Source: Tubulanus polymorphus (taxonomy: Eukaryota; Animalia; Nemertea). From it: a DNA stretch of 64,000 nucleotides. The notes beneath the pieces were generated by a model, which was not told where the DNA came from, did no database searches, and saw only the letters and a list, made by a program, of their open reading frames with translations. Position 1 is the first letter of the stretch. Each line of letters begins with the position of its first letter. Positions 3,094-64,000 of this stretch are shown here, in pieces. The stretch lies in the NCBI RefSeq assembly GCF_964204645.1, contig NC_134035.1, positions 13,638,686-13,702,685 on the forward strand, read 5' to 3'. A program made the position numbers and the translations under genes.

Positions 3094-3243
3094 CTTTTTC
3101 CAGTGATTCTATTTGCTCGTTCGTAAACGAAGTTCGATTTCGTTGTAATTTTCGTTTCAAGCGCATGCGCATTTGTTCTTCCGATTCGCCATTTTGTGAC
3201 TCGGAACTATGTGAATTACTTCCGCTGGTGGCGCCATCTGAAC
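3094..3243 (-). CDS. Pax6: Pax6 exon: linker plus homeodomain start (GSDGATSGS...[26 protein letters not shown])
   Basis: [12 protein letters not shown] is the Pax6 homeodomain N-terminus. Acceptor tatcgtacag, donor AAG|GTAAAT. 150 nt, phase 1-1. Confidence 0.96.
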
Positions 3244-12377: not shown

Positions 12378-12670
12378 CTGTGGAACCGGGTCAGAAATTG
12401 TGGAAATGGATCCAGAACTGGTGGAACTGGATCCTGAACTATGGAACTGGTTCCTGTTGAAAGGTTCAGAACTTTGTAACATGTTTCAGAACTGTTGAAC
12501 TGGATCCAGAACTGTGGAACTGAATCCTGAAGTGTGGAACTAGGTTCAGAACAGTGGAACTAGGTTCAGAACTGTGGAACACTGTATCCAGAACTGTGGA
12601 ACTGAATCCTGAACAGTGGAACTAGGTTCAGAACAGTGGAACTAGGTTTTCAGGAAGGTGGAACTCAGAA
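12378..12670. repeat. ~20-bp minisatellite agaactgtggaactggatcc (same core family, opposite orientation)
   Basis: Repeated gtggaact units about every 20 bp. Confidence 0.9.
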
Positions 12671-18572: not shown

Positions 18573-18919
18573 GCTAGGTATATTATCCTGATTACAAACT
18601 CCATCTGACAACAGCCGATCTCTGATTTCCCAGGCGAATATAGACGGACATTCTCTCTTATAAACGGCGATTTTACCGACCACTTCGCTGGTGGCCACTC
18701 GAGGTTTACTGCCCCCTATCGCCCGGGGCCGGATCGAACCGGTCTCGTAGTACCGGCCGAGTATTTTACTGACGCAACCGTTCGACACTTGTAGAATCCG
18801 GCTGATATCGCAGGGTCGGGCCCCGCTGTGCGCTAGTTCCACTATCCGTTGTCGCGTACTATCCGGTAGGGGGCGCCCGTTCACGAATACGCCTCCTAAT
18901 TGGTTAACGCCACTATGCC
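18573..18919 (-). CDS. Pax6: Pax6 paired-domain exon ([10 protein letters not shown]...NQDNIPS)
   Basis: The translation is a canonical Pax6 paired domain with the diagnostic ILQVSNG (I42, Q44, N47). Acceptor ctcgtttcag, donor AGC|GTAAGT. 347 nt, phase 1 to 0. Confidence 0.98.
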
Positions 18920-20488
18920 CTGAAACGAGAGTAAATATGGATATATTGAGAATTGTGAGGCAAAAACAGAATCGATATCTCGCCATCATCTGATCATACT
19001 GTATTGCATCCTAATGATTACGGGCCCAGTACTTCAAAGTTCAAAACGTAAATTAGGTCTTAAGTTGTTTATTTATGACTGGTCTAAATGTAAGCATTGA
19101 CCGCTATGGCCCAAACAGGACTCAGTTCTACTAGTAGAATGTATATAATTGGGTCCTAAATTTCTAGATCCAATATTCTAACACGTCTACGCAGAGATAT
19201 CCATTCACGACATCTTGTTGTAGCCTCAATTTGTTTTGTATTCATGTTCGGAGTTAACGTTTTCTGTTAAGTAACGATATGTCTGGGCTAGTGACTGGTA
19301 CTGCCCGAGGGGCTCGTGTGACTGGTACACAGCCGCCAACAGTGAGGGGCTAGTGTGACAGAGAGCCCACAGGGCACACGCCGCCACTACACTGTTACTG
19401 CATGTTATTACATTTTTCGTTAACTATCCCGATCGCTGTATCAGACAGGATATCACACAACATCGTTAGGTTTTATAACGGACACGTTCGGTGCAATGAC
19501 AATATTGACTTAAGTTGGTCACTGGTAGTTCACACACACGCTGTCGTCTGTAGGCCTCAGTTATCTCTATCAGGTATCTGCCGTTCTACAGTAAAACGTT
19601 TAGCACTTACACAAAACTTGCTTTTGAAATACACGTGAATCAAGTGAATAACGCAATGTAGATTTACGGTCAAAATCCAGTAAAATGGTTAATAGATAAC
19701 CACTGCTAAATTCAAGCTAGAAAATCTAGAAAAAGACATAGGAATTTAGATTTTTAAGAATTTAAACTGAAGAAAATGAAATTCATTTTGTCATCGCATT
19801 TTCATGGATTTATTTTGACTAGATCTCTACGCGTCATTCTGAATATCAGTCAAAACATTATTGATCGTCTTTTTTAAATGATTGTATCTTCAACAATCTC
19901 CGCCGTTTTAATACGATTATTCGATATTTCATTATTCAAATATCAAACATTTATATAATTCCATTAAAACAAAATGTTGTCACACGGCTATTGTTTCCCG
20001 CAGAACCGCAGAATATCGCAGCAAACTTTCAGAAAAAGAAGACAGAATCTTTTGTTCGCTGTGATAGCTCGGGTTTGAATTTAAAATGAAAATATCTCGG
20101 CGTGGCGTAATACGAATCCAGTCTATGAAATCTAAACTGACAAGATCTGTCAACTCGAGCTTGTCAACTTGTCGACAAACAAAACCTGTCAATCTAAAAC
20201 GTCTTCGAATTATCGCGTAAGACTTCCTGCGCCGGTTTTATATTTATCAGATTTTAATTCGATTTATCAAAACTCTCACTTCGAAATCACGATTTCTATC
20301 GAAATGATCGAATTGTTATGAAATCTTAATCAGGTTTTGCTCGATGTAATTTCGTTAAAGAAATTCATGAAATATGAAAAAAACTGAAATGAAATCTTAA
20401 TCAAAATGCAATAAATTCGCAGTTTAATTTGTTACTGTTGTTATTAATCTCATTGTTCTTATAATATCTCATAATTTCGTTATAACTT

Positions 20489-20777
20489 TTATTCTTGAAG
20501 ATGACTATAAGAATAAAGTCGAAACGTTGAATAAACTGCACTAGCTCAAGGAATACAGTATTCCTGAAGACGATTATTAGGATATAGTGGAAACGTTGAA
20601 TAAACTACACTAGCTCAAGGAATACAGTATTCCTGAAGACGATTATTAGGATATAGTGGAAACGTTGAATAAACTACACTAGCTCAAGGAAACATTTCAG
20701 ACACTTTTTAATCTTAGTTTGCAGGGATTTTATATTATCTTTACAACACGCACTCAGAGTGTTTCATCAATGGTTAT
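20489..20777 (+). mobile_element. Degenerate copies of the hammerhead/retrozyme-like repeat (3 units plus long-monomer tail)
   Basis: (c/t)tgaaga...gaaacgttgaataaact...ctagctcaaggaa repeated three times, then gcagggattttatattatctttacaac. The core or stem II is mutated in each copy. Confidence 0.7.
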
Positions 20778-21236: not shown

Positions 21237-21550
21237 GGGATTTTATATTATCTTTACAACACAGACTAAGAGTATTTCGTCAATGGTTATAATGAGGACA
21301 ACATCAGTATTTCTGAAGATGACTATTAGGATATAGTGGAAACGTTGAATAAACTACACTAGCTCAAGGAATACAGTTTTTCTGAAGATGACTATTAGGA
21401 TAAAGTCGAAACGTTGAATAAACTACACTAGCTGAAGGAATACAGTATTCCTGAAGATGACAATTAGGATATAGTCCAAATGTTGACTAAACTACCCTAG
21501 CTCAAGAAAACATTTCAGACTTATTTTTCTCACTCAGTTTCCAGGGATGT
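21237..21550 (+). mobile_element. Hammerhead/retrozyme-like repeat cluster (long-monomer segment plus 3 short units)
   Basis: gggattttatattatctttacaac...aatgaggacaacatcagtatt followed by ctgaagatgactattaggat(a/aa)agtcgaaacgttgaata-type units. Confidence 0.7.
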
Positions 21551-22225
21551 TAAGACATATCGCACTAATTCATTGTTGGCTGCAGCAGACTGGTCGGAAA
21601 CTGTAACAATGGTCTGTCTCATCCCACATACAGGTCGAGCGATGAAATCACCGCCGTTCATGAAACGAGCCGCGGTAAGTGAGCGTTGTAGGGAATGAAT
21701 GAGTTTTCATAGATCTGAAACACTCGTCGATTGCCCGCTTGTAAAAGATCAAATCGACTTGGTTAATGATCCAATTTGTTCCCTGCGCTATTCTTTCAAG
21801 TCTGGATGAAATAAGACGTTACGCGTCCCGTGTGTTATAGGATTGAGAGTCTTATATCGTCGACGGCACATCTGTGCTGTTATTTAATACTAGTCAGCAG
21901 ACGACTGACTGTATGAGGGGGATGTCCCCTCCGGGTCATAGGTCTATACCCCGCGCCTTCGCCGTCCTGGACATTTTCATCGTAATCAGCTTATACGATA
22001 ACCAATTCTCAAGTCATCATTTGGAGGAGTCGTCACATTAATGAAGTCATCTCTATTTTTGAGTCTCAATTTGTATTTCTAATTCAATTTACCAAAGTGT
22101 AAGTCGTCATTTTGGATAGGTCGTCAGTCCCAGTAGTTTGCACGACCTTAAGAGTCAAATATTAGCAATATGAGAATATAGCTTTAATAGTCAGCTAATT
22201 GAAATGACTCTCAAGTCTCAACGGA

Positions 22226-22365
22226 CTGTGGAACTGACTCTAGACAGTGGAACTGTGTAACTGACTTCAGACACTGTGGAACTGACTTAAGACACTGTGG
22301 AACTGACTTCATGACAGTGGAAAAGTGGAACTGACTTCGCACACTGTGGAACTGACTTCAGATAC
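22226..22365. repeat. ~20-bp minisatellite gacactgtggaactgacttc
   Basis: About 6 imperfect copies containing ctgtggaact. Confidence 0.85.
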
Positions 22366-25300
22366 TCAACAGCGGGTCCCGACTGTCATTATCCTCTAAT
22401 GATAATCAGCTCCCATGTCGTTATGGTGATATAAACAATATAAATTAATGATTTTGTCGTTTGGTTCAAAAGCGACAGTTTATCAATAACATTGAGTCTT
22501 GTATTGATATAATATATCATATACTCCTCCTTACTGGCGGGTGCAGTATAGTGTCCTTGCCGTTACTATTTGTCGGCTCTACTGTTGTTATACAGACTCA
22601 TCATCTAAACTCTTAATTAGTCTGAATGACCAGAAATTAGATTGTCACAATCTTAACTACACCCACTTTATATATCTTTACTTCCAAACTTCATCCTCTA
22701 TCTCCACCTGCCCATTTTAACTCTTCTCAAATTTTTTCTTGATCACTCTTTTCCCCCTCTGCCCTCTCCCTCTTCTCTCTTTCGCTCCTTGTCTTTTCCG
22801 CACACTCCCATATTTTATAACAATATTCCCACGGAACGCCCGCATGCGCAGTATTGTATACCGTGACGTCACGGAAACCACTTCCATACGGCGCGTTCAC
22901 GGCCCTAATTTCAATAAAATTCAAATTATCCGTTTCACGCGATAATTCTATAGCGTCTGTCATTTAGTGCCAACCCGGAAACACGTAAATTGCTAACCGG
23001 TCGACGGAACAATGCCAAACCCTGAGTGAAATATCAAAACGTCTTTAATACGACTCAAATTAGCCGTTATACCGATCATACGGGCAGGTAGGAAAAAAGG
23101 TCGCTTTGCATTTTTGCGAGAGTATAAATTTCTGAATTACGTTTGGCCGAAAGCGTGCGAACAATAAACTATAGCAGATGACATAGACCGGTTACCGGTC
23201 ACCATTGTTAGAATTCAAATTGTAACCATTGCGACCATTACCCGGAGCAGCGGATCATTTCAATTGTTTATATCCGTCGCAATAGAGAAAGACGTTGAGA
23301 AGACCAACACGTCACCCGATAAATAAATTCGGCTTCTAAATTCACAAACCGGCTTCAGAGATCCCCCGAGGCGGGTCATAACCAACCAGGCAATTGAAAC
23401 CACCTTAGCCTGTAATTATAGTTCATACCGCTACGAATTGCGAACCGTTTGACGGAGTTCCGACCTCAAACTGTGTCGGTCCGTTTGACGGGTTCCGGGC
23501 ACTACTGTGCATAGCCATTTTACTGGTTTCGGGCACTGTCGGGCCGTTTGACTGGTTACGGGTACTACTGTGTCCGAGCATTTATTGTACGCTCACAAAT
23601 TAAATTTCAAACAATTATAGTCGAACATGATGTTTTACCAACAAAATGTTGAATTATCATTATCATCCTTTAAGCTGCCCCGAAAATCGAATGGACTGCG
23701 AGCAAACTTTGAAGGTTTCTAAGAAATTTGGGGATGTGCTGCGGGTAATGTCGATTCATAATCAAACAGTATTTATCCATTCACAACTAAATCGATTTCT
23801 CAAGAGGCACTAGAACATGTTTCAGGGGCAATATCAATAGGATCTGTTAACACCTTGTTTTCCTATGTTTACATGTGGATATCAATTCATAAAAACATTT
23901 GTTTATTATGGTTATTTTTCAAACGAATTAATTCTTGATTTAGAGATAGTATTATATATTTTTTTCGATATTGAATCCTACCTTCCTCGTTGTGACAGGA
24001 CAATCGATTTGGGAGACCTGAATCGAGATATAAAACGAACCAAATATCAGTTTTAAATATAACCGCAAAGCAGTCAGTTAGACCCAAAATGGCGGATCCT
24101 GAGTATACCGCTAGTAACGTCGTTCGGGTGGTACTCAGAAACAGATTTCCTAAATATAATTTCTAGTATTTCTCCTTTTACGCGACTCCGCAATTTTATG
24201 GTCTTCAGATATATTTTGGTTTGACTTCAATCACAAAACTAGCAGCAAGTTAGAGAGCTTGCTTCGACAGGTTTTCTGGGACGCCCTTGACAGCCCTCAT
24301 TATTGATGGCCCTCAGTAAATTTCGAGGATCACTTATTGGCTTAACAAATATATCCTTTATGCTTCAATTATCGGTTAACCTTAAAAATACTATTTGTCT
24401 TTTTCACCGGGGAAATATGATGAACAAATCTAAACTTAAGCAGTCCTATATTCAGCAGTACAGACTCATACCACCCCTAACCCTTATAACACATTCATCT
24501 CGCGTAGTTCAATAATAACTAGTAGGTCTAACCTATCTCTGGGGTATTAGACATTCAGACGAATTCTGACATTTTTTTGACAAACGAGATCCGATATATG
24601 ATCTCCTTGTATTAACTACTGCGATTCGACCTAATCTCTATTGAATATTAAATCGTTCTCGATCTGGATCGGGATGTCCGGTTTGACCAGTAGATGACCA
24701 CCACGGTGTAAAACACTATCGGGGTTTTATACTGATTGACCACTGTCCGTGCTCTGTACGATCGTCTTGGTCAGTTTCTAATCGTTTTAACCTTGAAATA
24801 GGAAATTGTGTCTCTTTTCAATTTCATCGACTGATTGTTTTTGATTTGATTTAAATTTGAAATCGAAATCTTGGTCAGTTTTTCAGCATTTCTTCATAGT
24901 CCAGAAACCTGCGCAAAGTTAGGAGGACACTTTGATGATATGGTCTCAGATTTTAGATTGTCACCTCGCACCTGCGATGGTATGTTAAACGAGTACTAAT
25001 TTGAGCCGAATTTTGTAAAATGGCTCATCTAAACTTGATATTAATTTGTGTATGAAAATGCGTGGATTGCACATATTTAAATAAAAACAGCGGTTAGTGG
25101 TAAATATTCTCGATTTTCTGCAAGGTTAGCCTGTGGACGCAAGAACGAATTTTCAATTTTTTGAGTCCATGGTTGTTTTAGACCAAACAGTACAGTGTAA
25201 TGATTTGCATAGCTGTACATAAGCAGCCGTAGCCAGCCCTCTATACCCAACACCAGCACCAACAGCTACATATATCTCTCTCTTTCTCTGTACCTCGCAG

Positions 25301-27939
25301 TTTGCAATGATACGATTAATGAAAATCAATGCTACGGTCACTCATGCGTTAACCGTCAAACACTGCGCAGCTCTACACGCCTGCCATCACCACCACCACC
25401 AATGTCAAGGTCGGTTAAACTTCGCGTTTCTCTTGACAACACGTTTGCGTTGATCGAATTCACTTTTGATCTTATTGAGGAAAAAGTTGCCGCGGCGCAG
25501 TCATAGGTTAGGTTGTATAAGACCGGTTTGAGCTTATTTTGGGTCTTAGACAATCTATTAGACTAAGACTAGACTAAGGACCCGTCCCAGAGACTATGTT
25601 AGACGACTTTTCATCCTATGGATAAAATCACGGTCCAGTTCAACAGTCATGGCTTTCATCTAAGACCAGTCTAAGACCATCTTATTTCTATAGTCATTCT
25701 AACAATCTGGACCAATCTTAAGATAAAAACCTCTTATGGACGACTGTACAACAATGGACCCTGAATTTACCTTCGTGTCTGGAAAACTTCCATATACAAT
25801 TTTACATCTTTAAGACTTGTATATGATTATGTATTCGACGCTTGGTGGCGTCGCTGTCGCCGACCTGTTTAGAATATGCTAAATATGCAAATGAGGCGAC
25901 GGCGAAGTGCGCGATCACGTGAAAAGGTGTAAGAACAAGTTTTTAATTGTCGCACGGTAAAATGACTCGACTCGTCTCAGCGATCCTCGGGTTGGCGCCG
26001 ATCTCAAGTGTTTTCTTTTTAGCCTTTTGGAAGCCGGTGAATTGCCGACATTTTTAGGACTCACGCGTTGGGCATTCAAACGGACAATACGAATACGCGT
26101 TATATATGTGACGAATTGAATAAAACCACTTGAGATATAGACCCACAGTCGCCAGACGATTATAAAAGCACATAGTATCAAACATCGGTCGTAAACAAAA
26201 CCCGTTTTAGCGAACACAATACCGAGGTATTAGACTCATTTAACGTCGCGTTTGTAAAACGATTATTGAAACTGTTGAAATAGATTTAAATGAATTGAGA
26301 GTAGGAGTTGTTATCTATGAGACCGGTTATCATAACGTTACCATGTATAGTACAGGTATATAGGACCGCGACGACGGTGACAACATTCCAGACAATTTGT
26401 CCACGAGGAGAGAACAAATTTACCTCGCTCACTATAAACCCGTCGTTAACGCATTGTGTTTGTGCGTGTTTGAATTATTATTATTTTGATAAAAGAGCAA
26501 TTCGTCCGTTCTCGCGTTAAACCCTGTATATCACTGTTATTATCTATCGCCGATAAATCATAATTAGTCGCCTAATTAAACTATATCGATTGTGTTTGAT
26601 ATATCGCGTTGAATATATCATTTTAAAGTGCTCGCTTTACCTTGAATCGGCGGCGTGAATTATTTATAAGAGTTCTCTTTAGGAATAACCCATATTTATG
26701 TTTTTATTAGGTGACAATATTTCACTATATTCGCGACCTCGATACTTTCGCATCAACTTCTACGGATTGAAAATCCGAACTCTGAAACCTGGGTAGAACT
26801 GGAACCATGTGATTTTTCTACACGTTGAGATTTTATTGAGATTTTACTATTGACGGAGAATTGCTGTTCCTTTGATTGTGGAAGCAATAATTATTCTTTT
26901 GTTTGTTCAGAAATTCTCTAAAACGCCCTCTAAACCTTATAGCAAAATTCAACGAGAAAGATGAAGTCCGAAAAGTTTCCGTTAATCCAATCATTCATTT
27001 ATTTTGATGCCTAACTAATAAACTGCATTAGCTCGAGTTAAAATTTTGGAACCTTTTATTCTTATACGGACTCACAAAAAAAGATTCACAAAGATTTCGA
27101 CTTCATTGTTTTTTTTTTGTTGATATCAAATTTAGAAATTCAATATTGAGAAATCGTAGCATTTCCTACAAAAAGATGGATGACTATTTTCTGACGGGTT
27201 ACAAGGTGATTTCAGAGGCCAACAGCTAATAATTACTGGCAGACGACACAATACGATCAGAATAAGACCTGTGTTTTTATCAGTATCGGCGGCAGCGGCG
27301 GCGGCGGGAGTCAAACACGGAGAAGATCCAATAAAACAGGACAGCTCTATGAGACCTGTGTCTACAAACGAATTAAAACCTATTTGTCACCGGCCGCGCC
27401 GTTTGACAGGTATAAGGCCTATTATTATATTATCAATTTGAATGTTATGACATTCGTGGAGAAAATTGTTTTTCACACGAAACTCGTGTGTTCCAGGGGA
27501 TGGATATCTACCAGTTGTCTGTCGGTGTTTAATCGTCTTGTCGTCGGTTTCAGCTTGGTTAGAAATCACGGAAATAGCGTTCGCGAAATACAAGAGCGAT
27601 TTGTGTCCATAATTAGATTACATAAAGCCACAATTTCATGAAGAAAAAAATAAGAGAGCTTTTACCCGATTCTACGAGACATTTCCGAGCCTAAGTTGAA
27701 AATTGCTCAACTGACTTTACTGCGGATCTGTGTCCAGGTAATCGGTCCGTTTAGCCGAGAAATCACAAAATGGTCATCGATATATCTTAAAATTATGTTA
27801 CTTCTGGTTTTCTGGTCATTCCACCTGATGATGGCTGTTAGTCAACAGCCGAAATGTTGTGGTTTCGTTCTAATAAATTATCTCATATAAAATTTGAATT
27901 GTGGGATTTCTTCATTAAACTTAAAATTATGGTATTAAG

Positions 27940-28290
27940 TTGTTGAATTGATTATAGAACTAAAATGAGCTTAGACTGGTCTTAAGTTGTTAGATTGGTT
28001 ATAGAAGCAAAATGAGTTTAGACTGGTCTTAAGTTGTTAGATTGGTTATAGAAGCAAAATGAGCTTAGACTGGTCTTAAGTTGTTAGATTGGTTATAGAA
28101 CTAAAATGAGCTAAGACTGGTCTCAAGTTGTTAGATTGGTTATAGAACTAAAATTAGCTTAGACTGGTCTTAAGTTGTTAGATTGGTTATAGAACCAAAA
28201 TGAGCTTAGACTGGTCTTAAGTTGTTAGATTGGTTATAGAACCGAAATGAGCTTAGACTGGTCTTAACTTGTTAGAGTGGCTATCGTACA
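27940..28290. repeat. 47-bp satellite array (~7 copies), reverse complement of 13262-13860
   Basis: Unit taaaatgagcttagactggtcttaagttgttagattggttatagaac. Confidence 0.96.
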
Positions 28291-29984
28291 GACTAAGCTA
28301 TAACTATGGAACTGGTCCCCTGAATTTAGAAATGTCACTGAATGTTGCAGTCCTATAAATTATCATTATCGCATTGGTCAAAGTTTGAGTAATTGAGAAA
28401 TTGATGGCGTTAAAGCGTTAATAATGAGCTACATAATGAACTAATCAGTGTTATGTATATTGCTGACGCTGCCGCTGCTGCTGCTGCTGGTGCGGTTTCT
28501 ATTTTCTCGTCTGCTGAGCTGTGATTAGTTATATCGCACCCGTTAAGCGGTAAATTACGTGTTAAAACGATGACTGTTTAAACTCATTTATTTGACAGAT
28601 GAATGTTACACCTGAACACCTGTATATAGGTCTCTCTAGACACTCACAACACACGTGCACTTAATAAACTCTACATATTCAGATTATTAAAAAACCCTAG
28701 AAAGATTTCTAAGACACCGAAATGTCTTTTAATTTTTGATTTCAAATTCAATTTTCATCTTCGTAATCTTAGTTTTTTATTAAGTAGGTTTTTAATCGTA
28801 TTATCTTTTTTCCAATTCTGAGGTACAGGCAACTACTACACAGTTCCTCCTTGACCCTGTTCCACGGTTCACAGGATCCAGTTCCACGGTTCACAGGATC
28901 CAGTTCCACAGTTCATAGTATCCAGTTCCACAGTTCTGGAACCAATTCTACAGTTTTGAACCCACTTCTACGGTTACCGAACTCAGTTCCACCGTATCAA
29001 TTAGTATCTGTTTCTGTTCGAAAAAAGATATTGAATAATGCAGAATCGTAAATTCATTATTTTCGCGACCTAGATAATGCTGATTATTCAGGTTCTGTCA
29101 ATGGACATCAGTCAGGATCGCGTGATGAAAATGACCGGACCCCCGCGCGGGTTAAAGAGAGATACGACGATTGAAATCGTTTAAATGCGGTACTCAACGC
29201 GACCCGGCGGGGGGTATACAGCGGTATAATTAAACGGAAGCCCGTCAGCGTTCGCGCAGTACCGCGGTTTAACTACGACCTAGCAACCCTCCTACCCTCC
29301 CCGCTGACAGGTCCCGCTGTGACGGTAAAAAGATGTTTTCACGAAAAAACTTAATCTTCGCACTCACTTCAGTCGCGCTATTTACCGATATACGTCAGAC
29401 TAATTAGACACAGACAATGTTTGCATTACCCCCCAGAGTTAAACAGTTGATACTTCTCTTCCCCCTCTCCCTCCCCTCTCCCTCCCCTCACTCCCCTCAC
29501 CCTCCCCTCCATCCCCCATTTCAGAGTCTCACGAAGAAGTTGCATTTTGTAACAAAATAATCTATGCGTTTGTTTTGTAGTTGACTTTTGGAAAACAACA
29601 GTACAATCGAGATCATCATTCCCAGGCCTGCACATAACGCCCCCTACCGGACGGATTTAGATCTAGTCTGTCTCTTAACGTATTTCAAAATAACAAATTG
29701 TTGAAAATCCTCAGATAATTCAGGTTATTGAATATGTATTAGGTGTTTTGTGAAAGTGTGTTTTGGCTGTATTTATCTTTGCTTGCCGCATTTCATGGAC
29801 TTTTCTAAATTCCGATAAACTCCAAAACCGATATTCTTAAATTATGACACCTAAATGTGTAGAAAAACTAATTAAAACAAAACACTTAAAAATAACTAAA
29901 AAAAGCATCTAAAATTATCACGAATTTCTAGGACTACTATACAAATGCGCATGCGTAAGAGGAGAAATCAAGATGGCGTCTTAC

Positions 29985-35529: not shown

Positions 35530-35740
35530 ACTCAGTTCCACAGAGGACTCAGTTCCAGTTCTGGACCCAGTTCCAGTTCTGGATTGAGTTCCTCAGTTCA
35601 GAGTTCCACAGTTCTGGATCCAGTTTCACAGTTCTGGACCCAGTTTCACAGTTCTGGACTCAGTTCCACAGTTCTGGACCCGGTTCCGCAGTTCTGGACC
35701 CAGTTCCACCTCTGTACCCACGGCCACAGTTCCGGACCAC
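35530..35740. repeat. ~20-bp minisatellite cagttccacagttctggacc
   Basis: About 9 imperfect copies. Related arrays at 28850-28995, 55405-55530, 61600-61720 and 4755-4870. Confidence 0.88.
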
Positions 35741-40979: not shown

Positions 40980-42922
40980 AGTTGACGCGGTCGCTGATTG
41001 ATCCTCAATTGTGGCGGTTTGATTTTAAAAACTCGACGATATTTCGGGTGAGCTCTCTGTGATATATCGGACGAGCTCTCTCTCTATCTCAGATACTGAT
41101 CACGTGTTAGATATGTTTGCGATATAGTGAATGAAGGAGAAGTCTCGATATATCAATAAATCCGTGTAAACTCAGTAGAAACAATCTGAAAATAAACAGA
41201 AAATGATAATGATAATGATATAAGTAAAAAAGATTTTGAGAGGAAAATTAATTAATTAATTAATTGATAATCTCACGACGGAGAAAGAGAGTGAGATTTC
41301 GAGCGATAGAAAAAGTAAAAATAATAATTCAGAATATTCAATTTCGTAGTAATTTAATTTTTAGAAACGTTGAACGGATTTTGAGCGTTTAATTCCAATT
41401 GTTACGTCGAGCATTAACCAATATGATAACTGCGTGAATTTATTAATATCATCGTGTGCCCCTCCCTTAGAAAAAATATTCTGCGAGAAAATGAATTCTA
41501 AATTTGAAATTATTTCCACCAAAAACTAATATCCGATCTTTCTGCGTATATTCGGGATAGTGAATTAAGTCTAAAACTTTTCTTTAGATAAAAACCCGAA
41601 ATTTGAAAAATTTTTCTCTTCTAGATTATAACTTTTCAATATATTTATTGTACCTGCCGTTTATTTAATTTTATTCCGACGAGAATCTCGAATCGCGCGA
41701 ACACAAACAAAGAATCCGATCCGCCGAAAATAAAACGATATTACCGAACTATCCTAAAATAACGACGACAACACTCTAAAATAAACTACGTCCGAATTGT
41801 GTTGAACGTAACCTCGATTTCCATCTCGTATCCGCGCCCGATTGAGAGATTGAAAGCCTTCGACGCAAAAAATTCCAGTTTTAAATCGACGACGAATTAA
41901 AATCCCGTCTTCGCATCGCAACGACGTTAAACGCGTATACACAATAGATAAAGAAAAACGTTTAAAACGTCGTCGAAAAAAACTTCGACGTTTAAAAATT
42001 CAGTATACGTTTAGAATAACGTGGTTAATCCTAGGTTTTCACCGCGGTTGCGCGCACACGGAGAGATAAAACTCTACTCCCGTTTCTGTTATTTTGTGTA
42101 TCAGTGGTTTTTGTTAGAATTGTTGTCGGTTGATGAGTGAGCGACCGAGCGACTCGTAACGCGTGTCCGATCTATTTAAAATAGTCAGCGCACAACAGTC
42201 ACTCCGCCTGCTCTCTCGGGACGCAGCGCTCGTAGCGCCGTCACGCGGCCACTTCACAACTATCAATACACCGATATATAAACCCCGAATCTAAGAGGAA
42301 TTCGTTGATTAAATTCATTCCTACTTTAGTCGTTATGAAATATCGAAATCGTGCATAAAATCATATCAGAATTTAGCTTATTCTGTTTTTGTGTCGAAAT
42401 CGTCCTTTTAGATACCTATGAAATATATAAATGTTTCTTGAAAGCAGAAACGTCTTGTAAAACTATACCAGCAAATGAAGAATTGATTATTTTAAAGAAT
42501 ATAAGCTTTAAGAATCGTGTTTTTATCATAATTACGAGAATGGGGCCCTTGCTGTTCTGGTCACAGGACACCACACTGGTTTCCATTGTTAAACTAATTC
42601 GATTTTAAAGACGCCATGATTTGAAACGTTCATTGTTTCCCGTTGGACCGGCGGTTTTTTTTATAAAGAAGTAAATCTCGGTTTCAAATTGCTCCCTTGC
42701 GTCAATCGTTATCGGCTGCGTATAACGCAGTGAATCTGTCGTCTGCGGTGTCTGGTGACTTACACACACGCTGCGGATTCGATCGGAAGAATTCGAATCC
42801 GGCGTTTTAGTAATATCTACAAAACGTCGAATCAAACGCCTTGGGAAACTCAACGAAAAAAACGTATCAAATTGTGTTTGTTTATCGATTCGTAAATATT
42901 TTGCGATATAATTTTAAATTGC

Positions 42923-43585
42923 TTTTATTCTAATAGTCATCTTCAGGAATACTGTATTCCTTGAGCTAGTGTAGTTTATTCAACGTTTCGACTATATCCT
43001 AATAGTCATCTTCAGGAATACTGTATTCCTTGAGCTAGTGTAGTTTATTCAACGTTTCCACTATATCCAAATAGTCATCTTCAGGAATACTGTATTCCTT
43101 GAGCTAGTGTAGTTTATTCAACGTTTCGACTATATCCTAATAGTCATCTTCAGGAATACTGTATTCCTTGAGCTAGTGTAGTTTATTCAACGTTTTGACT
43201 ATATCCTAATAATCATTCTCAGGAATACTGTATTCCTTGAGCTAGTGTAGTTTATTCAACGTTTCGACTATATCCTAATAGTCATCTTCAGGAATACTGT
43301 ATTCCTTGAGCTAGTGTAGTTTATTCAACGTTTCGACTTTGTCCTAATAGTCATCTTCAGGAATACTGTATTCCTCGAGCTAGTGTAGTTTATTCAACGT
43401 TTCGACTTTATCCTAATAGTCATCTTCAGGAATACTGTATTCCTTGAGCTAGTGTAGTTTATTCAACGTTTCGACTATATCCTAATAGTCATCTTCAGGA
43501 ATACTGTATTCCTTCAGCTAGTGTAGTTTATTCAACGTTACGAATATACCTAATCCTAATATCCTAAATAGCTCATCTTCAGGAA
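42923..43585 (-). ncRNA. Tandem array (~9.5 x 69 nt) of minimal type I hammerhead ribozyme motifs, retrozyme/Penelope-like
   Basis: Minus-strand unit reads UAUUC-CUGAAGA-U-GACUAU(UAGGAU)AUAGUC-GAAA-CGUU-GAAUA. It has the core boxes, a 6-bp stem II, a 5-bp stem I and a palindromic ACGU stem III. Period 69 (ttgagc at 42961, 43030, 43099). Confidence 0.8.
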
Positions 43586-46500
43586 CGTATAAATATAAAA
43601 AAAGATGAAAATATGGTCTGAATGATATCTATTTATGTGAGTTGAGTAGGAACCAATAAAATCTTGTACACTCATATTCAATAAAAGAGATGTCTCAGCT
43701 ATTCGCGCGCTAAATGCCCTCATATTTTTATCACTGCGGTGTACAGAGACATGGACGAATCATACTTGTGCACTTCAAATTAACCGATGACAAAAAAACT
43801 GCGCGATTAATCGAAAGAAAAACAGTTTGTTCGATTGTGCGCGAATAGCGTGGCATATACACGCGATTTAGTCCGCATTGTTTGTCGTCTATTGCGAGTA
43901 ATTCGAGCGGAATTTTCAATTTTACGTTTTTACAAACTCGTCGACTATGCGAGTTAGCGACAAAGCTCGACATTATTTTATAAGATTCCTGTTCCGATAG
44001 TGTGAGTGCATGTGTTTTTTAGCTCGGCGTATATCACCGTATAATGGCTTCAACAACAGGTATAATGCATAAGACTTTAATTGGGGGTATACCTAACAAT
44101 GCGCCGGGGATATAGGACAGCTTTCAATCAGTAAAACCGGCATGCGCGTCAAAAGAAGCCGAGAATGAGAAGTAATGTGTTACGGATTCCGTCGATGCTC
44201 ATTTATTTATCAGCGAACACGTATAAAAACTACACATGTATTGAGACAAGTATTCAGGCCCTCGCCCGCCCGCAGGGGACTCCTTTTCTTTAGATTTACC
44301 GTCAGTGGATCGTGTTTAAATTTGTGACATTTTTCGCTCAATAGCTCGACAAGTTGGTCCTTGATATTTATATATGGAAAAAAGTATATAAACGGATTGT
44401 AGATCGGGAATCGTATTGACTGTGAAACTCGCTACTTAAGTGTTGGGACCAGATTATCCAAATTCTTGAATTGGAATGCATTTTAGGACTCAAAAATAGA
44501 GATGACTTCAGTAATGTGACGACTTATCCAAATGATGACTTAGACTTAGTAAATCGAATTAGAAATACACAAATAATTGGGCTCAATATTATAGAGAAAA
44601 CTTTGATAATCTGACGACTTATTCAAACGATGACTTAACGCCAGTTTGACCGCGGAATTCTTCCAAAAACGTTTATGACGTCACAAACTACTGTTAAATT
44701 GTGTTCACATTTTTTTTTCTAACAACAAAATTACCCGTGAACATTTAATGAAATCGAGGGCCACGATAGAGAGCGATCTAATGAGTAGGTAAACTGTGAA
44801 ATAGCCGAGCTTCCTACGCGTTAAACGTATGTTTAATTCCGAGTTGGATATTATAGAAATGAGTAGGGGGTTCACTTGTGTTCGGGGACAATGCAATAAA
44901 ACGTAGACCGCCGTTTGAATACCGCGTCTGCTTGATAATAGTTCAGCGGTACCGCGGGCGCTTTCTGGGGGACGAAACGGTCCTTTCTTAAGAACTCGAA
45001 TTTTGATTGGTCGCCGCGCTCATTACCGATACCATCCTCTCTCCGAATCGCGGGCATCGATTTCAAAGGGATTTCGGGCGGCTTATAAATTGGCCCGGGG
45101 ATACTGACCGTACTAATACCGCCACCTAGCGATAAAATCGAACATCGAGTCGCTTTATGAAAGTAAGATCTTTATCGTACGATATCTCAGATATCTCAAA
45201 ACAGATCGATATATCAACCATATAGCAACAACACGTAGAAGAAGATTATAAAATATAAAACGATGGGTTTTTAGTTTCTAAGGAAGAGTTAGATCACTAT
45301 AATGTGTCTCTTAGGAGGTGCTAGCCACCCCCGGATACCGGCATAGGCCGACATTTTTAAGGCTATTCCTTACGTGGGCCAAACTAAACAGAAATAATCA
45401 TCTTCACAATTCTTTGCCTGAAAGAACTTTGAAAGTTTAATTGACGAAATAATTTAGAGCGAAGATACACAACCCGGTAAAAAGTTTGACTCCAGACCCG
45501 TTTCAGAGCGGTAAAACCTTGGAGTGAAACTTAAACTGAGATATTGCCGGATCGGGTCCTGGCTGATAATTATATTCTATAATCAAATCTGTTTCACAGC
45601 GGTTGCAGGTGCAATTATGACGTCATCGTCTGGTAATAAACAAACCCTAATGAACTGTGAACGATCAGCGGGGCCCCTACCCGGCGCCGTTACCTCTGTG
45701 TCCATACCCTACCCGAGCGAGTGTCCAGATGCTAACAAGTTTAACTGAGGTTTATTTATTTTGCTAAATTAGACCTCGGACTCTTCATCATCGTCATCAA
45801 CCGTCTCAAATTTTGTGCCTGGTTTTTAAAATTATTTAACAAGATCCGCCATTTTCAGTTGTTTATTTGTAACCGGCGCCATTGTTGCGCAATAAAGTAT
45901 CATCCGTGCCTCGTGACCAAATATAGCGATTTGAAGAGTTTCACGCCGAATTTCCCCATCTGCGCCGGGAGTTTCAATAACAGTGAAATTTTGTATTATA
46001 CAAATTGCTCGATTGGATACCAGACAGGTTTGTATGTCCACTTGTGGCAAAGAGCTCTCGAAAATCGTGCCGACAGCGTTTCGACATAGTCACCAAATAA
46101 AGACTCGATCTGTCGCTCTTTGTCAGGTCTAGAGTTTAAGGGTATTTTCGATTATCTATCTCATACGACTCGCGGCCCTTTTCCCCTTTTAATTGTAATT
46201 GATCCAATTTGTCCGCGTGTCCGCTACGCAAATAGATACAACACTATAACAACCCTTGACTTCTAAGCGGTTATCTGAGCTAATGGTTGAACATTCTAAA
46301 TCTCGAGAAGTTTTGGAACTTTTTGAATTGATTTGTGAGTTTACCAGCGGTAGGTTTTTCAAAACTGAAATACTACTTCTTTAAATTTAAATCGAGAGGG
46401 GAGAAAGAGAGAGAGATATGGAGAGCCTACTAGCTAGCGTCTAAAGCGATTTGCGGCCTTATTTTTCAAAATTGCAATATCCTTTCATTTAGGCCAATAG

Positions 46501-49080: not shown

Positions 49081-50734
49081 GACGCGAACGCTCGCCGAAT
49101 GGATGCTGGCTGCATTGTTACGTCCAGCATCCGAGAGAGCGACAAGATGACGATGATACCGAGATGATACTCTACAAGGATTTATCTTTAAAACGATCCT
49201 GGTTAGAAATCTCAATCGGTAACTCAAGAATATTTAGTCTTAGGGACAAAGTTACTTCATAAAAGAATATAAGACTGAAACAAACTACAAACGCATTTAG
49301 AAAAACGCATTTTGAAAATGAAATAAGTTTGTGTCCCAAGAATTAATCTCAAAAGTTACTAAGAAACGATATCTATCGTCTGGGGTGTGAACAGGTTTTT
49401 TGTCGGGATCAAAATGATTCTTAGAATCTGTTACGCATCAAATTCGCCTACGTTAAACCGGACTGAAATTCTGATTCTTGTAAGTAAAATAAATAAAACC
49501 GTATTTAACAACAATCAAGAGAATGGAAAACGGTAACGGATAACAAACTGCGCGTGTAGTGATGGAAAACCGATTTTGTTGTTTTGCAAAATTAGAAATA
49601 TTCCTTATCGAACATTGATGAAACTCCCCGAGTCCGTGTCCTACCGACAATATGCCATATTACACCCAACACTCATAAATAAAATCCGAAAAGTCTCCTC
49701 GAAACTATTTGAGTTTATTCTCGACGTTTCGACTATTATATCTTAATAGTCATCTCTCTTCAACAAAGAATGATGATCAATATTGTATCGTCAGTTAGTA
49801 GTGATCCTAGTCGTGTGTTAACAATGAGGAAAACGTTGACGAAACACAGTTAAAAATGAGTCCCTGTTGTAACCACAATACACCTTAAAATCCCAAACTC
49901 AGGCAGAAAATGAATATTCCTGATGATGTTCATTAATTAACATGAAATCTTTCTGGACTCACTTTTCTTTTTGAGTGTAACATTCATTTCTTTTTGTAAT
50001 AAACATTTCTTGTTGTTTTAACGACCCAAATAATGAGACTTCCCATCCAATGATAGAACATCCCCGTATAGGGAAAAGATTCCGAACATTCTCTCTCTCA
50101 CTCATACCCCTAATAATCTGTATAATCTGTTTCGGATCTACTGGAGATACTTTCTTCATCTTCTCCTAAACCGCATTTCAAATTAGTTACCGATTCCAGC
50201 GTCAGGCGTCGCTACAATCTAATAAAAACGGTAGATATCTCGTAAGTCGAGAAAGTCTCCTCGCGGTGGTGTTAAAGAAATTCATTGTGCCCGAAATTAA
50301 GGTCACGCCGCCGCCGACCCGATCTCTTAGCAGACGACAAAACGAGTAATGAATGATGAGTTAATCAGGTATCTACAATAGTCGAATCGTCACGACATTC
50401 GTGAATATCGGAAATTGCAAACACCCCTCTTTCAGTACGTCGCACGTCACTGCAAACACCCCCCTCAATATAGACACCTCGGTGTCCGCTAAATGACTCT
50501 CTAATTCTTAATGAAGTGTTTAATTCACCTATTTCTCTCGTCTCTGCTACCACTGAATCTACTTAAGGTTCCTCTTAATTTTTCTGATAAGTAACGAGAC
50601 GAGTAGTACTGTACTTTTCTGGTAAGTGTGGTCGCTCATTTAGCTGTGGTGACCTGTCAATGATTCAGTAAAATCATTTTGCACAAAAGAAACAAAAAGT
50701 ATCGTAAGCCCCAGCGCTGAGCCCGTAAGGTATA

Positions 50735-54200: not shown

Positions 54201-57200
54201 CAAGATGTGTCGACACGTTTGCTTTGTTATGGTGAAGGTGGAGCCTGAACTGCATCGTCAGAGCTCTGTGTGTGACTTTGAACGAGGAGCAGAGATGGAG
54301 GCGAGATCAGAGAGAGCGAGGAATCAAGAGCGAGGAATATCGAGAGCAAGGAATCACCGTAGGAATCACCGGGTACACACACACACACACACATGTACCT
54401 CGTTACGCTGTCTAAAACAGACTCAAAAAACCAAGTTATTTATCGACGAATTCTATTGATCTTTAACTCCCCCTGTAAGCACCGTCGCCAGGCCTGAGCC
54501 CCTTCGCAGTTATCAGCTGCTCGGTAGAACGGTTTCTGCAGCCCGTAAATATCGATACCGTGTTAATGCTTGTCTCGTCGTACATTGTCGAACTCAATTT
54601 CGGCTACGTTCGTTTGTTTTTCAGTTTTTTTGAGAGGAGGAGGAGGAGAGAAAGAGAGAGAGAGGAGAGGGGACAGAGAGAGAGGAAGAGAGAGAAGGAG
54701 AGAGAGAGGAGAGAGGGTAGGGGAGAGAGAGGAGAGAAGGAGGAGAGGAGAGAGGAGAGATGGACGGGGAGGGCAGGGAAAGGAGGGGAGAGAGAGAGAG
54801 AGAGAGAGGAGAGAGGGACGAGGGAGAGAGAGATATAGATGCGCCTAATGAAAGGAGAGTGAAGCGAAGGAGAGAGTGAGAGTTGCTGCTGTGACTAGAG
54901 AGAGAGAGAGAGAGAGACAGCATTTAGTTGGTAGTGATATAGGAGAACTAACGTTGATTACACCCTGACTGGACTATCTCAGTAAAAAACACACCCAGTC
55001 ATCATAAACGATAACTCTGATGAACAAAGAATTTTCTCTTCGGAACAACATTCATGATTCATTCATTAGTAAAACAACTAGCAGATCATTCTCTCTACAT
55101 CTCTCGGCAGACGAGACCTCCATAACCGATCGCTCCGGTATAACAACAATCCCGTAGAACTTCATTGTCGAAATACGGTAAAATCACACACGATACAGAA
55201 ATAAGAAAATGAGGTATTGAAAATTTCCTTGAGCTTAAAGTTAAATTTCAACATTTCGACTTCCTAAAGTTATCTTCGGAAATACTAATTTTTAAACATG
55301 TTTTACCCATTTCAACACGTACAGAGTGCATCATCAACATTACGTTGAAATAATATTCACGATTTTCTAATCAACTAATTATAGCACATTAATTTATGTC
55401 AAAACTGTGAAACTGGATCCTGGGTTCAGAGTTAACACTAATTCATGCGTGGAACTGGATCCTGAGTTCAGAGTAAACTCTAACTCACAACTGTGGAACT
55501 GGATCCTGAGTTCACAGTTCACTCTGAATCTGATTCTGAACATTTTCAGATTCATAGATTTCACTAGAGAAATCTTTGTGACGAAATCTACAATTCCTAG
55601 AAACGTTAAATTCATGAATACAATTTTCTTAATTCTTTTATTATCGGAATAATTATCGGAATATTTATCGGAATATTTTCTGGTGCAAAGAAATTCATTA
55701 TTCCCGATGCTCATTAAGACATAAAGGGTTAACATATGGAGAGATAAAGAGAGTGAGAGAAGGAGAGAGTTAGTTTACGGTTGACTGAATTCTAGATCAG
55801 TTAGAGAAAGAAAATAAGATAACAGCTAGCTGTCAGAGAGTAACAGTGAGAATAGTCGGGTGTAAATGATTTAATCTCTACAGGATTAACAACTTCATTC
55901 ACTACCAGTATAACTATACGATAAGACGTTTATAACCCCTGCGGTCCCGGGTTCAAATCTAATTATTGCACCTATCAACACTATGATTATTGGAATGGAG
56001 ACGTTTGAAGTAGCTATGTAGAGGGAAGTCAAATGTTCACGTCAGTTAACCGCGTTCACTTGATGTCACAGCGCATCATACTGGCCGTCAAGGAGCAAGT
56101 GAAAAATCATAGTTTGACGGCCAGTATGAAGGCAAGTTGACGCATGTGAACCATGTGATACTTGTGACGTCAGTCAGTTTATAGTCAGGTCGTAAACGTG
56201 ATTTTTATCACGTCAGAATGGCCGGCACCATGTCGACTGGGTTCGGGTTTAATCGGAGTCCATCGAGCAGTCTGACGTCACTTGCACGACCCTGACCTCT
56301 ACAGCGCGGTTGCGAAGTTGGAGTTTTAGAATCAAGTCCGCGCGTCAAGCCTTACGGAATTCTTCAAGAGACTCGAGGAATCGCACTGCAGGAACCGCAT
56401 ACCATAGAGCACTTACAGTTCTATGGTCGATTGAACATTATATCGCCCAGGAATGATAGTATACGACATTCCTCAAGGGACTCGAGGAACTGGCAGACGA
56501 CAGTACGGAAAGTTAAAGTTCTATGGTCGATTGAACATTAGAACGACCAGGAATGAAAGTTATTCTGGTGACAACATGGGTAAACTTTAGTTTGTAGGAT
56601 CCGACTAACTCGCTCACTGAAGCTCGCCATAGCTGATCGTATTGAATTGATATTTGAGTGTTTTTTGTTCGCTGTTGATCTGATTGGGATTCACCTGCGA
56701 TACAGTCGACTAGATCCACCCCCTACAACTCCATCCTAGCGCTCTAAAACACGACACGATTTATCTATTTAATGAAATAGTGATGTTTTAGTTTCTTCGT
56801 TCATTCTTTTTTTTTTGTACCGATAAATATTTATCCATTTATGCTACAATAATACGATAAAACATCTAAAACATCATCATCAGCAGCAGCAGTAGCGGCA
56901 GTATCGGAGTTGTAGCTACAGCAGCTGCCAGGGCTTTCAACTTGTTTTTTCCCTCCTCCGAATACGACAGATCGACGTATGAGTACACCCCGACACCGCC
57001 GCCATTAACGAAATAGATTTTCCATAATATTCATATTTTTCATGTTTTACGCCGGGATGAATCGCGTTTCATTAAAGGATTCTCGGGCGCGAGTTGTATT
57101 TTCCGCTTGGTCGGATTAAAATCTATTCGTTTGGCTGCAGATGTTCCGTAGTTTCGTATTCAATAACTCAAATGTGTGACTGGTTACCGCGCGGTGTGAC

Positions 57201-61445: not shown

Positions 61446-63479
61446 AAAAAAAATCATCTAACCATGCACTGCTCCGTGATCTATCATACGTGGAAACTGG
61501 ATCTGCTGTTTATCTACACATTACTTATGTTTTTAAATCTTGATAAAGTTTAGATTTGACTCCGAGTTAAAACATTGAAAATGAACTAACTTAAACACGT
61601 TAACTCTAACTCACAACTGTGGAACTGGATCCTGAGTTCACAGTTAACTCTAACTCACAACTGTGGAACTGGATCCTGAGTTCACAGTTAACTCTAACTC
61701 ACAACTGTGGAACTAGATCCCGATTACAAATTTTATGGCGATTTATAAAAGTGATCCGGCCGTTAAGGAGAAACAAGGTATCAATTTTTTCTAGCTTTAG
61801 TTTTACCCGATAAAGAGTACATGTAATTAAAAGGCGATATTTTCTAAACGTACCCAGCTCGTGCGCAAAGGTAAATAGTCTACCGGTAATTAATCTGTGT
61901 CAAAATATTATTAAAAACCCATCAATAATTTCATCTTCCGATAAAACAAATTGTCATCATCAACAAAAACGGGTCTCTTTTTTTAATCAATTTCAAAATC
62001 ACGCTAAATTAGTTTCATGAACAAACACCGTGATTTCTGATTTCTGTTAATATTTATATACCGACTTTTAATAATCGAAATTAAAATCTAAAAATGTGAG
62101 TAAAAGCTCGATAATTTCTTCAGAGAATTTCAAACGTTCATAGAAAAATATCGAATTTCAAATATTGACTTTTTTCTGACAGAATTAACTGAAAAACGTT
62201 TGACCTTCGCCGCGCAAATAGAGACGTATTCGCGCGGGACAGATTCGAATTGTCGGCTACATTGACGGATTGTATTGTGCGCTATTTTGACGGATCGCTC
62301 CGCGAGGAGTTGACCGAATTGAGTCGACAGTTTGTTCCGTTGTTGTTCCGCGCATCCAGAAAATTACCACGACTACAAAACCTTTCTAGTTCGTTGTTGT
62401 TGTAACTGTCGTGTTTGTTGTTGACAATGAAAACGGTTTACGGTTCGGACAGGTAATTTTGAATTTCGCGTCAGGAGTGGATTATAGTGTTCCCATGGGG
62501 AGGAGGGGTACGGAGAGAGAGGAAGGGAGGGTAAGGGGAGAGGGGAGGGGGTGTATCAGTTCTCGACGCGCAAATTCGAAATATGAATTCAAAGTTCAAA
62601 TCATCGCAAACATCAGCCATATTGATGATGTCACAATTAGCACGGAAGTCATGAGTTTCAGTCAAGCATGTCTTTCACTACCCGGTCAGTGTGGCCGAAT
62701 TGTTAGTACTGTCGCCTCACAACCTGTGCATCCCGAGGTCGAATCCTCTCCGACGATTATTTATTTTTTCTTTTTTTTTAGAAAAATACAGAATTATCCC
62801 TGTTTAATCTGTTATTTTTGCGCAAGTTGTTCATCAATTAAGATCTTATTCAAGGGAAATGGAAACATTTGGTTGTTAAAGTTGGAACTGTGGAACTGGA
62901 TCCAGAGTAAATTAGCCTCATAAAATAGTGGAACTGATTTCGCAGACTACAGCAACCCTGAGAGACTGCTATTACTATCATCTCGGGAACAATCTTAGAA
63001 CGAGTCGCGAGACAAAAATGTAAAGAAAATGATTCTTTGTCGATGGAGTGCCATCACACAAGCATTGAAGACAGTTTTGTCGATTTATCCCGCTACCGTT
63101 ACTGCTGCTGCTGCTGCTGCTACTGCTGCTACTGCTGCTGTAGCTGGTACCGAGTTTCCCCGATCAAATATTTATGAGCTCCGCAGAAGAGACTTTATCT
63201 GTAGCGATAATAACGCTAGAATGAACACTACCGAATAATCCGGTTTGACAATATGGATGTTTCATGTATAACGCTCTAATATAGGGCCGACTCTCTCTCA
63301 CTCGCTCTCTCTTTCTCTCTTTCTTTCTTTCTCTCTCTCTCTTCTTTTCGCCGGTATACTGAAATAATGATTGCTATCTTTCTGTAACCATAAATGTCTT
63401 AAACTACTCCAGTGTAACTGCCATTATTTCTTTGAATAATTCCCGTGGTTACTGCGCAGTCCTGTATAGTTGTAATTCC

Positions 63480-64000
63480 TATACCAGGAATAAACCAACG
63501 ACCCTCGTTCTATAAACCATGGATGAAACATGATCTGAGTCCGTGTTGTAAAAACGATATAAAATCCCTGCACACTAAGAATGGAAAGGCCCAAAATGTT
63601 TCTCTTTGCTAATAGTTTATCATTCAACGTTTCAACTTTATCCTAATAGTCATCTTCAGGAATACTGATGTTGTCCTCATTATAACCATTGATGAAACAC
63701 TGTGAGTCCGAGTTGTAAAGATAATATAAAATCCCTGCACACAGCTGAGAAAAAAAAGAGTTTGAAATGTTTCCTTGAGCTAGTGTAGTTTATTTGACTT
63801 TATCCTAATAATGATTATCATCTTCAGGAATACTGTATTCCTTGAGCTAGTGTAGTTTATTCAACGTTTCGACTTTATCCTAATAGTCATCTTCAGGAAT
63901 ACTGTATTCCTTGAGCTAGTGTAGTTTATTCAACGTTTCGACTTTATCCTAATAGTCATCTTCAGGAATACTGTATTCCTTGAGCTAGTGTAGTTTATTC
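63480..64000 (-). mobile_element. Hammerhead-containing retrozyme-like array with ~168-nt and 69-nt monomers (truncated by window end)
   Basis: Same hammerhead unit as 42923-43585. atccctgcac recurs at 63564 and 63731, and tcttcagg ends at 63660 and 63828 (~168-nt period), followed by 69-nt units. Confidence 0.75.

Follow-up and report, generated by a model that had tools for sequence, protein, structure and literature searches.

Minimal hammerhead ribozymes (min-HHRs) were defined as a class in the terminal repeats (pLTRs) of Penelope-like elements (PLEs) by Cervera & de la Pena 2014 (PMC4209133). The published examples have no helix III and can therefore act as dimers only; they combine a long helix II with a helix I of 4-5 bp, and an unpaired base between A9 and G10.1 is one of their hallmarks (PMC4209133). 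Four features emerged from that study without being imposed by the search descriptor, among them covariation, the G10.1-C11.1 pair and palindromic positions 15.2-16.2 (PMC4209133). Their cleavage in vitro is only weak, and was seen in dimeric and trimeric constructs (PMC4209133).

Metazoan non-LTR retrozymes are tandem repeats that carry type I hammerheads, give rise to circular RNAs and co-exist with PLEs (Cervera & de la Pena 2020, PMC7229834). Their unit size, in the 2020 definition, is about 150-450 nt (PMC7229834). A preprint has since argued that the retrozymes of Xenopus derive from PLE pLTRs (Li, Clavereau & Pollet 2026, 10.64898/2026.07.22.740005); it reports retrozyme consensus lengths of 51 to 972 bp, with multimers enriched at chromosome ends (10.64898/2026.07.22.740005). 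Hammerheads are also found in satellite DNA, and that of the newt satellite acts as a dimer according to Forster et al. 1988, as cited in PMC4209133. In this study, we compare with these systems a tandem array found in a 64-kb stretch of DNA, called hereafter the window, and we trace its relatives in the rest of the genome.

The 69-nt array and its hammerhead motif

TRF reported one array at window positions 42926-43554 (period 69, 9.1 copies, 95% matches), free of indels. On the minus strand, eight full 69-nt units are flanked by a degenerate unit on the 5' side and a truncated one on the 3' side. Each unit reads CAG UAUUC CUGAAGA U GACUAU UAGGAU AUAGUC GAAA CG U U|GAAUA, where the bar marks the predicted cut, and ends with a 25-nt linker, AACUACACUAGCUCAAGGAAUACAG, which wraps into the next unit. 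The hammerhead parts are a 5-bp stem I, the CUGANGA box, an inserted U, a 6-bp stem II and the GAAA box; a loopless palindromic ACGU occupies the position of stem III, and the base at the cleavage site is U17. Such a minus-strand layout of a minimal type I hammerhead in each 69-nt unit had been proposed in a preliminary description of this DNA, and the reading of the units bears it out. On the minus strand, the full units start at 43506, 43437, 43368, 43299, 43230, 43161, 43092 and 43023. The components of the array, in minus-strand order, are as follows.

42926..43554, minus strand (hammerhead sense): the 69-nt tandem array, TRF limits
about 43507..43590, minus strand: degenerate first unit at the 5' array edge, with stem II insertions and an altered stem I; 19.8 bits
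43438..43506, minus strand: unit 1, equal to the consensus; hammerhead at 43460-43503; 74.4 bits
43369..43437, minus strand: unit 2, intact core; stem II with one A.A mismatch and 4 bp left
43300..43368, minus strand: unit 3, intact core; one mismatch in stem II and one loop change
43231..43299, minus strand: unit 4, equal to the consensus
43162..43230, minus strand: unit 5, dead core; CUGAGAA for CUGAAGA, GAAA changed to AAAA, and a C to U change in stem II
43093..43161, minus strand: unit 6, equal to the consensus
43024..43092, minus strand: unit 7, boxes intact; C11.1 changed to G, which breaks the G10.1-C11.1 pair
42955..43023, minus strand: unit 8, equal to the consensus
42923..42954, minus strand: last unit, 3'-truncated, stopping within the stem II loop

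Four of the eight full units are thus identical to the consensus, two differ by mismatches in stem II only, one has the C11.1 to G change and one is dead. Core boxes are kept in 7/8 of them and all hammerhead features in 6/8, in agreement with the earlier estimate of about six intact cores out of nine. In unit 1, the cut is predicted to fall between 43465 (U17) and 43464 (G1.1).

Judged by its sequence, the motif is a genuine member of the PLE min-HHR class, and no chance look-alike. The catalytic boxes C3U4G5A6N7G8A9, G12A13A14 and A15.1...U16.1 H17 are all present (as CUGAAGA, GAAA and ACGU-U), and variation among relatives falls on the free position N7 (A or U, and C at locus L064). One unpaired base lies between A9 and G10.1: it is U in the 69-nt family and in PLE2, a second PLE family described below, and A at loci L062 and L064. 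The "one extra U" pointed out in the preliminary description is therefore indeed there, but it is no oddity, being a published hallmark of PLE min-HHRs (PMC4209133). The G10.1-C11.1 pair closes the 6-bp helix II in the consensus; over 32 distinct sequences, positions 10.1-11.1 are GC in 21 and GU in 3, and a change on both sides was never seen. In 17% of the sampled copies a G is found at 11.1, so that the pair is broken there. Palindromic 15.2-16.2 positions, with no helix III hairpin, are found as ACGU in the 69-nt family and PLE2, as AUAU in L062, and as AUGU, which would pair by G.U wobble, at window position 27817. All the emergent hallmarks of PMC4209133 are present in the 69-nt motif.

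An ordinary satellite might by accident hold a CUGANGA and a GAAA box, and the absence of any Rfam hammerhead match could be taken in that sense. The search with Rfam models suggested in the preliminary description was run with Hammerhead_1, Hammerhead_3, Hammerhead_II, HH9 and HH10, and gave no hammerhead match, either at gathering score over the whole window or at E<=10 over window 42500-44000. This miss is expected, since the motif is without the stem III hairpin and with an inserted base, unlike what these models expect. Weak Rfam matches to sRNA, snoRNA and group I models (E 0.27-8.6) were dismissed as noise. As a control for chance, a minimal-hammerhead descriptor was applied to 40 Mb of first-order Markov sequence with the composition of the window. 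The relaxed descriptor gave 4 matches, i.e. about 1 random match per 10 Mb of strand, a rate which leaves some room for accidental resemblance, but at the quality observed in the array (stem I >=5 bp, stem II >=6 bp) there were 0 matches in the 40 Mb. Moreover, the inserted base, the G10.1-C11.1 pair and the palindromic 15.2-16.2 positions are all present even though the boxes do not impose them.

Penelope-like elements and the origin of the repeat

The RVT_1 and GIY-YIG domains are together the defining domain pair of PLEs. A six-frame search of the genome for the GIY-YIG domain gave 150 scored matches. Many of these fall within 817-841-aa open frames, which come in pairs, tandem or inverted, with a spacing of about 2.86 kb. 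In a sample of these stretches, a descriptor search then placed an identical 46-nt hammerhead at positions 4369 and 7225 of locus L063 and at positions 3182 and 6040 of locus L068, that is, one hammerhead per tandem unit of 2856-2858 nt. Stem I of these copies has 6 bp (UUAUUC/GAAUAA). The ORFs that they flank are 833-841 aa long and contain RVT_1 and GIY-YIG, and the hammerhead sits about 100 nt upstream of the ATG. In L063 and L068, the identical motif thus resides in the terminal repeats of an element with RT and GIY-YIG domains, the place where a min-HHR is expected, which speaks against a chance resemblance.

The second family, PLE2, has an 817-aa open frame, with a 796-aa ORF from its ATG, and at the equivalent position it carries the motif CGC-CUGAUGA-U-GGCUAA-UAGUCU-UUAGCC-GAAA-CG-U-U|GCG. 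The RT and GIY-YIG assignments confirmed with Pfam are those of the 833-841-aa family. Two further variants were found, at L062 (inserted A, a 7-bp stem II GGGUGGU/ACCACCC, palindrome AUAU) and at L064 (inserted A, N7 = C). At least two PLE families have uninterrupted frames of 817-841 aa in L063 and L065-L068 (contigs C12, C5, C1, C2 and C8). The uninterrupted frames, in head-to-tail or inverted copies, suggest recent or ongoing PLE activity, and the source PLE looks active in this genome from its sequence. Within the 64-kb window, tblastn detected no remnants of PLE ORFs. At L055 885-956 (minus strand), a PLE-end hammerhead has an internal duplication of the segment from loop II to ACGU, from which it follows that slippage occurs within the motif itself.

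Among the PLE-family variants, the sequences of stems I and II change yet stay paired, while the boxes, the inserted base, G10.1-C11.1, the palindromic 15.2-16.2 positions and U17 are fixed. A gapless alignment of 5 sequences, not fitted to any covariance model, had both sides changed in 8/14 pairs, and 90% of its cells were paired, against 27-43% for slid partners. With 32 distinct sequences, both sides were changed in 11/12 pairs and 84.8% of the cells were paired, against 33-40% when slid, in an alignment that was fitted to the covariance model and is hence biased towards structure. Both alignments thus show helices I and II compensating for changes from one family to the next. The association with PLEs and the covariation of stems between PLE families contradict the reading of the array as an ordinary satellite with two fortuitous boxes, which we consider very improbable. 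By contrast, the assignment of the motif to the minimal type I hammerheads of the Penelope and retrozyme kind, made in the preliminary description, gains support from the identical motif in PLE ends, from covariation and from the class hallmarks.

The array near the Pax6-type gene belongs to a large family. With the 69-nt unit as query, more than 220 copies of 94-100% identity were among the matches listed, on at least 8 large contigs, and the 167-nt unit of a second tandem satellite gave 148 listed matches. Matches to both queries are spread over many contigs, mostly close to contig ends. Taken together, the two satellites number a few hundred copies or more, in either orientation and spread over many chromosomes. 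The flanks of the arrays are unrelated between loci, and the phase varies at both array ends. The best 150 covariance-model matches genome-wide were all near-identical copies; the search for more distant hammerhead families covered the individual loci extracted for comparison.

The 69-nt unit corresponds to nt 1-67 of the 167-nt unit and is, on this sequence comparison, a shortened form of the 167-nt satellite. The latter is mostly located at 0.19-2.3 Mb of contig C8, and mixed 69/167-nt arrays exist, for example at window 63.6-64 kb. The 167-nt satellite and the PLE end are homologous over the first ~97 nt, with 82% identity; for the last ~70 nt of the 167-nt unit, no match was detected in the PLE copies compared. 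All hammerhead features are kept in 136/173 sampled 69-nt units (79%), and in 30/79 sampled 167-nt units (38%).

Taken together, these sequences make it highly probable that the array is a non-autonomous, retrozyme-like tandem repeat, which arose from the pLTR of a PLE and in which each unit carries the minimal type I hammerhead of that PLE. The derivation from a PLE is carried by the motif in PLE ends, the homology of the 167-nt unit to a PLE end, the covariation and the genome-wide dispersal. The family has inserted at least dozens of separate times, and the copy on the Pax6 side stands for one of these events.

An array of this sort could also grow by unequal crossing-over of its DNA, with no ribozyme activity involved, and this would count against a retrozyme-like repeat. 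It is therefore conceivable that a satellite of PLE origin grew and spread at the DNA level only, through slippage, unequal exchange and segmental copying, and that its hammerheads are inert in vivo. In line with this, the mutations of the array lie mostly in the hammerhead part and not in the linker, and arrays cluster close to contig ends, as ordinary satellites do. Across 252 copies, conservation of the core does not exceed that of the linker, as a relic would have it, but this comparison says little either way, the family being young and its copies 95-99% identical. The many unlinked loci, with their unrelated flanks and variable end phase, point to mobilisation rather than to purely local growth; every hammerhead feature is still there in 79% of the sampled 69-nt copies, and the intact PLE ORFs could act in trans. 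We give the inert satellite somewhat less than an even chance, the predicted folds described below being also in its favour.

Predicted folding of the array and the Pax6-type gene

The classical double hammerhead can be fitted onto a transcript of two units with all its helices nested. In this drawing, a shared 4-bp helix III would form between the ACGU tetrads of units n and n+1, the GAAUA past the cut site of unit n would pair with UAUUC in unit n+1 and so enclose a loop 1 of 25 nt, and the outer UAUUC and GAAUA would close the second ribozyme. The idea, put forward in the preliminary description, that neighbours complete each other's stem III in cis appears sound at the level of this model, which is the established one for double hammerheads. 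Each hammerhead would then cut after U17, to give 69-nt units with 5'-OH and 2',3'-cyclic phosphate ends, and the cleaved RNAs may be copied and inserted by the reverse transcriptase and endonuclease of a PLE. A 69-nt circle would, to our knowledge, be smaller than any ribozyme-bearing circle experimentally shown so far.

With ViennaRNA, the double-hammerhead fold of a 69-nt dimer has an energy of -12.3 kcal/mol, against -29.4 for the minimum-energy fold. At the junction of 69-nt units, which reads GGAAUAC-A-GUAUUCC, the tail of one unit can pair with the stem I strand and C3 of the next, as a competitor helix (GUAUUCC/GGAAUAC); predicted pair probabilities are 0.56-0.73 for the competitor and about 0 for the stem I pairs. 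In the PLE context the competitor is absent, and the minimum-energy fold of the monomer has stems I and II. Array units are thus expected to be poorer ribozymes than PLE copies, as far as can be judged from nearest-neighbour energies, in which neither tertiary contacts nor folding during transcription are taken into account. Cleavage in the array is probably weak, given the competitor helix of the 69-nt junction and the poor cleavage of min-HHRs in vitro (PMC4209133). The 17 kcal/mol by which the competitor helix puts the active fold above the minimum, together with that poor cleavage, are what would be expected of hammerheads inert in vivo. It seems unlikely that the whole chain of events takes place, in which the 69-nt units would self-cleave as neighbour dimers into 69-nt linear and circular RNAs, these would serve the PLE reverse transcriptase as rolling-circle templates for new arrays, and sense arrays in genes such as Pax6 would cut the host pre-mRNA.

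The window has seven places with the motif family, on the plus strand at 20.5, 21.3 and 27.8 kb and on the minus strand at 42.9, 49.7, 55.2 and 63.6-64 kb. Five of them belong to the 69-nt family, one is a 5'-truncated relative and one is a solo hammerhead of PLE2 type. Four of the places are arrays of the 69-nt family. The arrays other than the one described above, and the exons of the Pax6-type gene, are as follows.

20487..20691, plus strand: second array, about 3 units, antisense to the Pax6-type gene
21305..21532, plus strand: third array, about 3 units and a tail, antisense to the Pax6-type gene
63618..64000, minus strand: fourth array, with 69-nt units that extend beyond the window end, then two units of ~168 nt
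18618..18911, minus strand: paired-box exon, which sets the strand of the Pax6-type gene; the 42.9-kb array is about 24 kb upstream of it on that strand
about 2.8 and 1.25 kb, minus strand: homeobox exons of the Pax6-type gene, located by script

In the fourth array, one of the ~168-nt units has an intact hammerhead (63618-63667) with G.U at 10.1-11.1, and the other is broken by a deletion. The second and third arrays lie 1.6-2.6 kb upstream of the paired-box exon, and the tail of the third matches PLE1 sequence just downstream of the hammerhead. At 27817-27866 (plus strand) is the solitary PLE2-type hammerhead, with stem I CCAC/GUGG, stem II GGCUGU/ACAGCC and AUGU for ACGU; it adjoins a 47-bp satellite array at 27930-28284, which could itself be PLE-associated. 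The two other solitary copies are degenerate remnants on the minus strand, one at 49712-49755, 5'-truncated and with a stem II longer than in the 69-nt family, and one of the 69-nt family at 55242-55286, in which U4 of the CUGA box is lost.

A dispersed minisatellite, with a motif of 20-22 nt (ACTGTGGAACTGGATCCAGAA and variants), is also present many times in the window. It recurs on another contig, at positions 2141-2511 of locus L028, where it adjoins a hammerhead array.

12378-12665, 22225-22366, 28859-28936, 35545-35738, 55402-55525 and 61599-61720, both orientations: ACTGTGGAACTGGATCCAGAA minisatellite

The hammerheads and the Pax6-type gene share their sense strand, and on it some 24 kb separate the array from the paired-box exon downstream. 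The sense orientation noted in the preliminary description is thereby confirmed, array and Pax6-type exons being all on the minus strand. Such a position would suit a cis-regulatory role, in which the array, sitting in sense in a 5' intron of Pax6, would cut the nascent pre-mRNA or release small RNAs that affect the gene. The insertion is moreover found, with both its flanks, in another set of DNA data from the species. The sole public run covering this stretch (X1) has an even depth of ~23x on the unique flanks with ~1% base differences, which marks it as DNA of a different individual or haplotype; over the repeat, its depths sum to 10^4-10^5. In this DNA run, window 44486-44569 corresponds to another, very high-copy repeat, where many contigs branch and the summed contig depth is ~23,800, against ~23 on the flanks.

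Against a role in Pax6 regulation, the family of the array is scattered over the genome in a few hundred copies or more, its members nearer to the paired-box exon (at 20.5 and 21.3 kb) run antisense, and the active fold is predicted to be weak. Retrozymes are furthermore depleted in the introns of Xenopus genes, rather than recruited there (10.64898/2026.07.22.740005). We consider such a role very improbable. The link to Pax6 drawn in the preliminary description is left unsupported by the dispersed copies, by their presence in both orientations within the window and by a folding that favours an inactive alternative; an effect of the array on Pax6 is unlikely. As one ordinary insertion among many, the array has little import for the biology of Pax6.

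Comparison with described hammerhead repeats

The motif resembles the PLE min-HHRs (PMC4209133) in its type I core, its CUGANGA and GAAA boxes, the unpaired base between A9 and G10.1, and the G10.1-C11.1 pair. Helix II is long, at 6 bp, and helix I short, at 5-6 bp; there is no helix III hairpin, and with its palindromic 15.2-16.2 positions the motif would have to act as a dimer. It differs from them in being amplified alone, as a 69-nt head-to-tail array with no PLE ORF nearby. The published min-HHRs are mostly solitary, or in pairs ~3 kb apart, and heterogeneous, whereas the 69-nt family is 95-99% uniform.

Satellite DNAs with a type I hammerhead and a weak helix III are known in newt satellite 2, Schistosoma Sm-alpha and Dolichopoda pDo500 (PMC2837043). 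Their units are larger than those described here (330-500 nt), they have a helix III hairpin, and their cleavage was shown experimentally.

There is also a likeness to metazoan retrozymes. Like these, the 69-nt and 167-nt satellites are short, AT-rich head-to-tail repeats with one type I hammerhead per unit, present at many dispersed loci and with arrays enriched near chromosome ends. Autonomous PLEs co-occur with them, and the repeat has its homologue in a PLE pLTR, a relation documented for Xenopus in the preprint. The hammerhead here is of the minimal PLE kind, in contrast to the canonical one with contacts between loop 1 and loop 2. The 69-nt repeat is described here at the level of DNA. 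As for size, the 167-nt parent is at the low end of the ~170-400 nt described for the retrozymes of 2020, and the 69-nt unit falls below that range, yet is inside the 51-972 bp of the preprint. The 69-nt monomer, called unusually small in the preliminary description, is small indeed, but not unprecedented (10.64898/2026.07.22.740005).

The kind of element is thus already known, and the relationship of retrozyme to PLE is, from the sequences compared, the same as in Xenopus, now in another genome. Together in this one genome are an autonomous PLE, a 167-nt satellite homologous to the PLE end, and a 69-nt derivative made of the ribozyme and a linker. It offers in this way a clean example of a step argued so far mainly for vertebrates, and it supports the view that the retrozyme-like repeats of animals are non-autonomous offshoots of PLE terminal repeats. 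The 69-nt unit is also a very small natural substrate for tests of dimeric hammerhead cleavage and circle formation.
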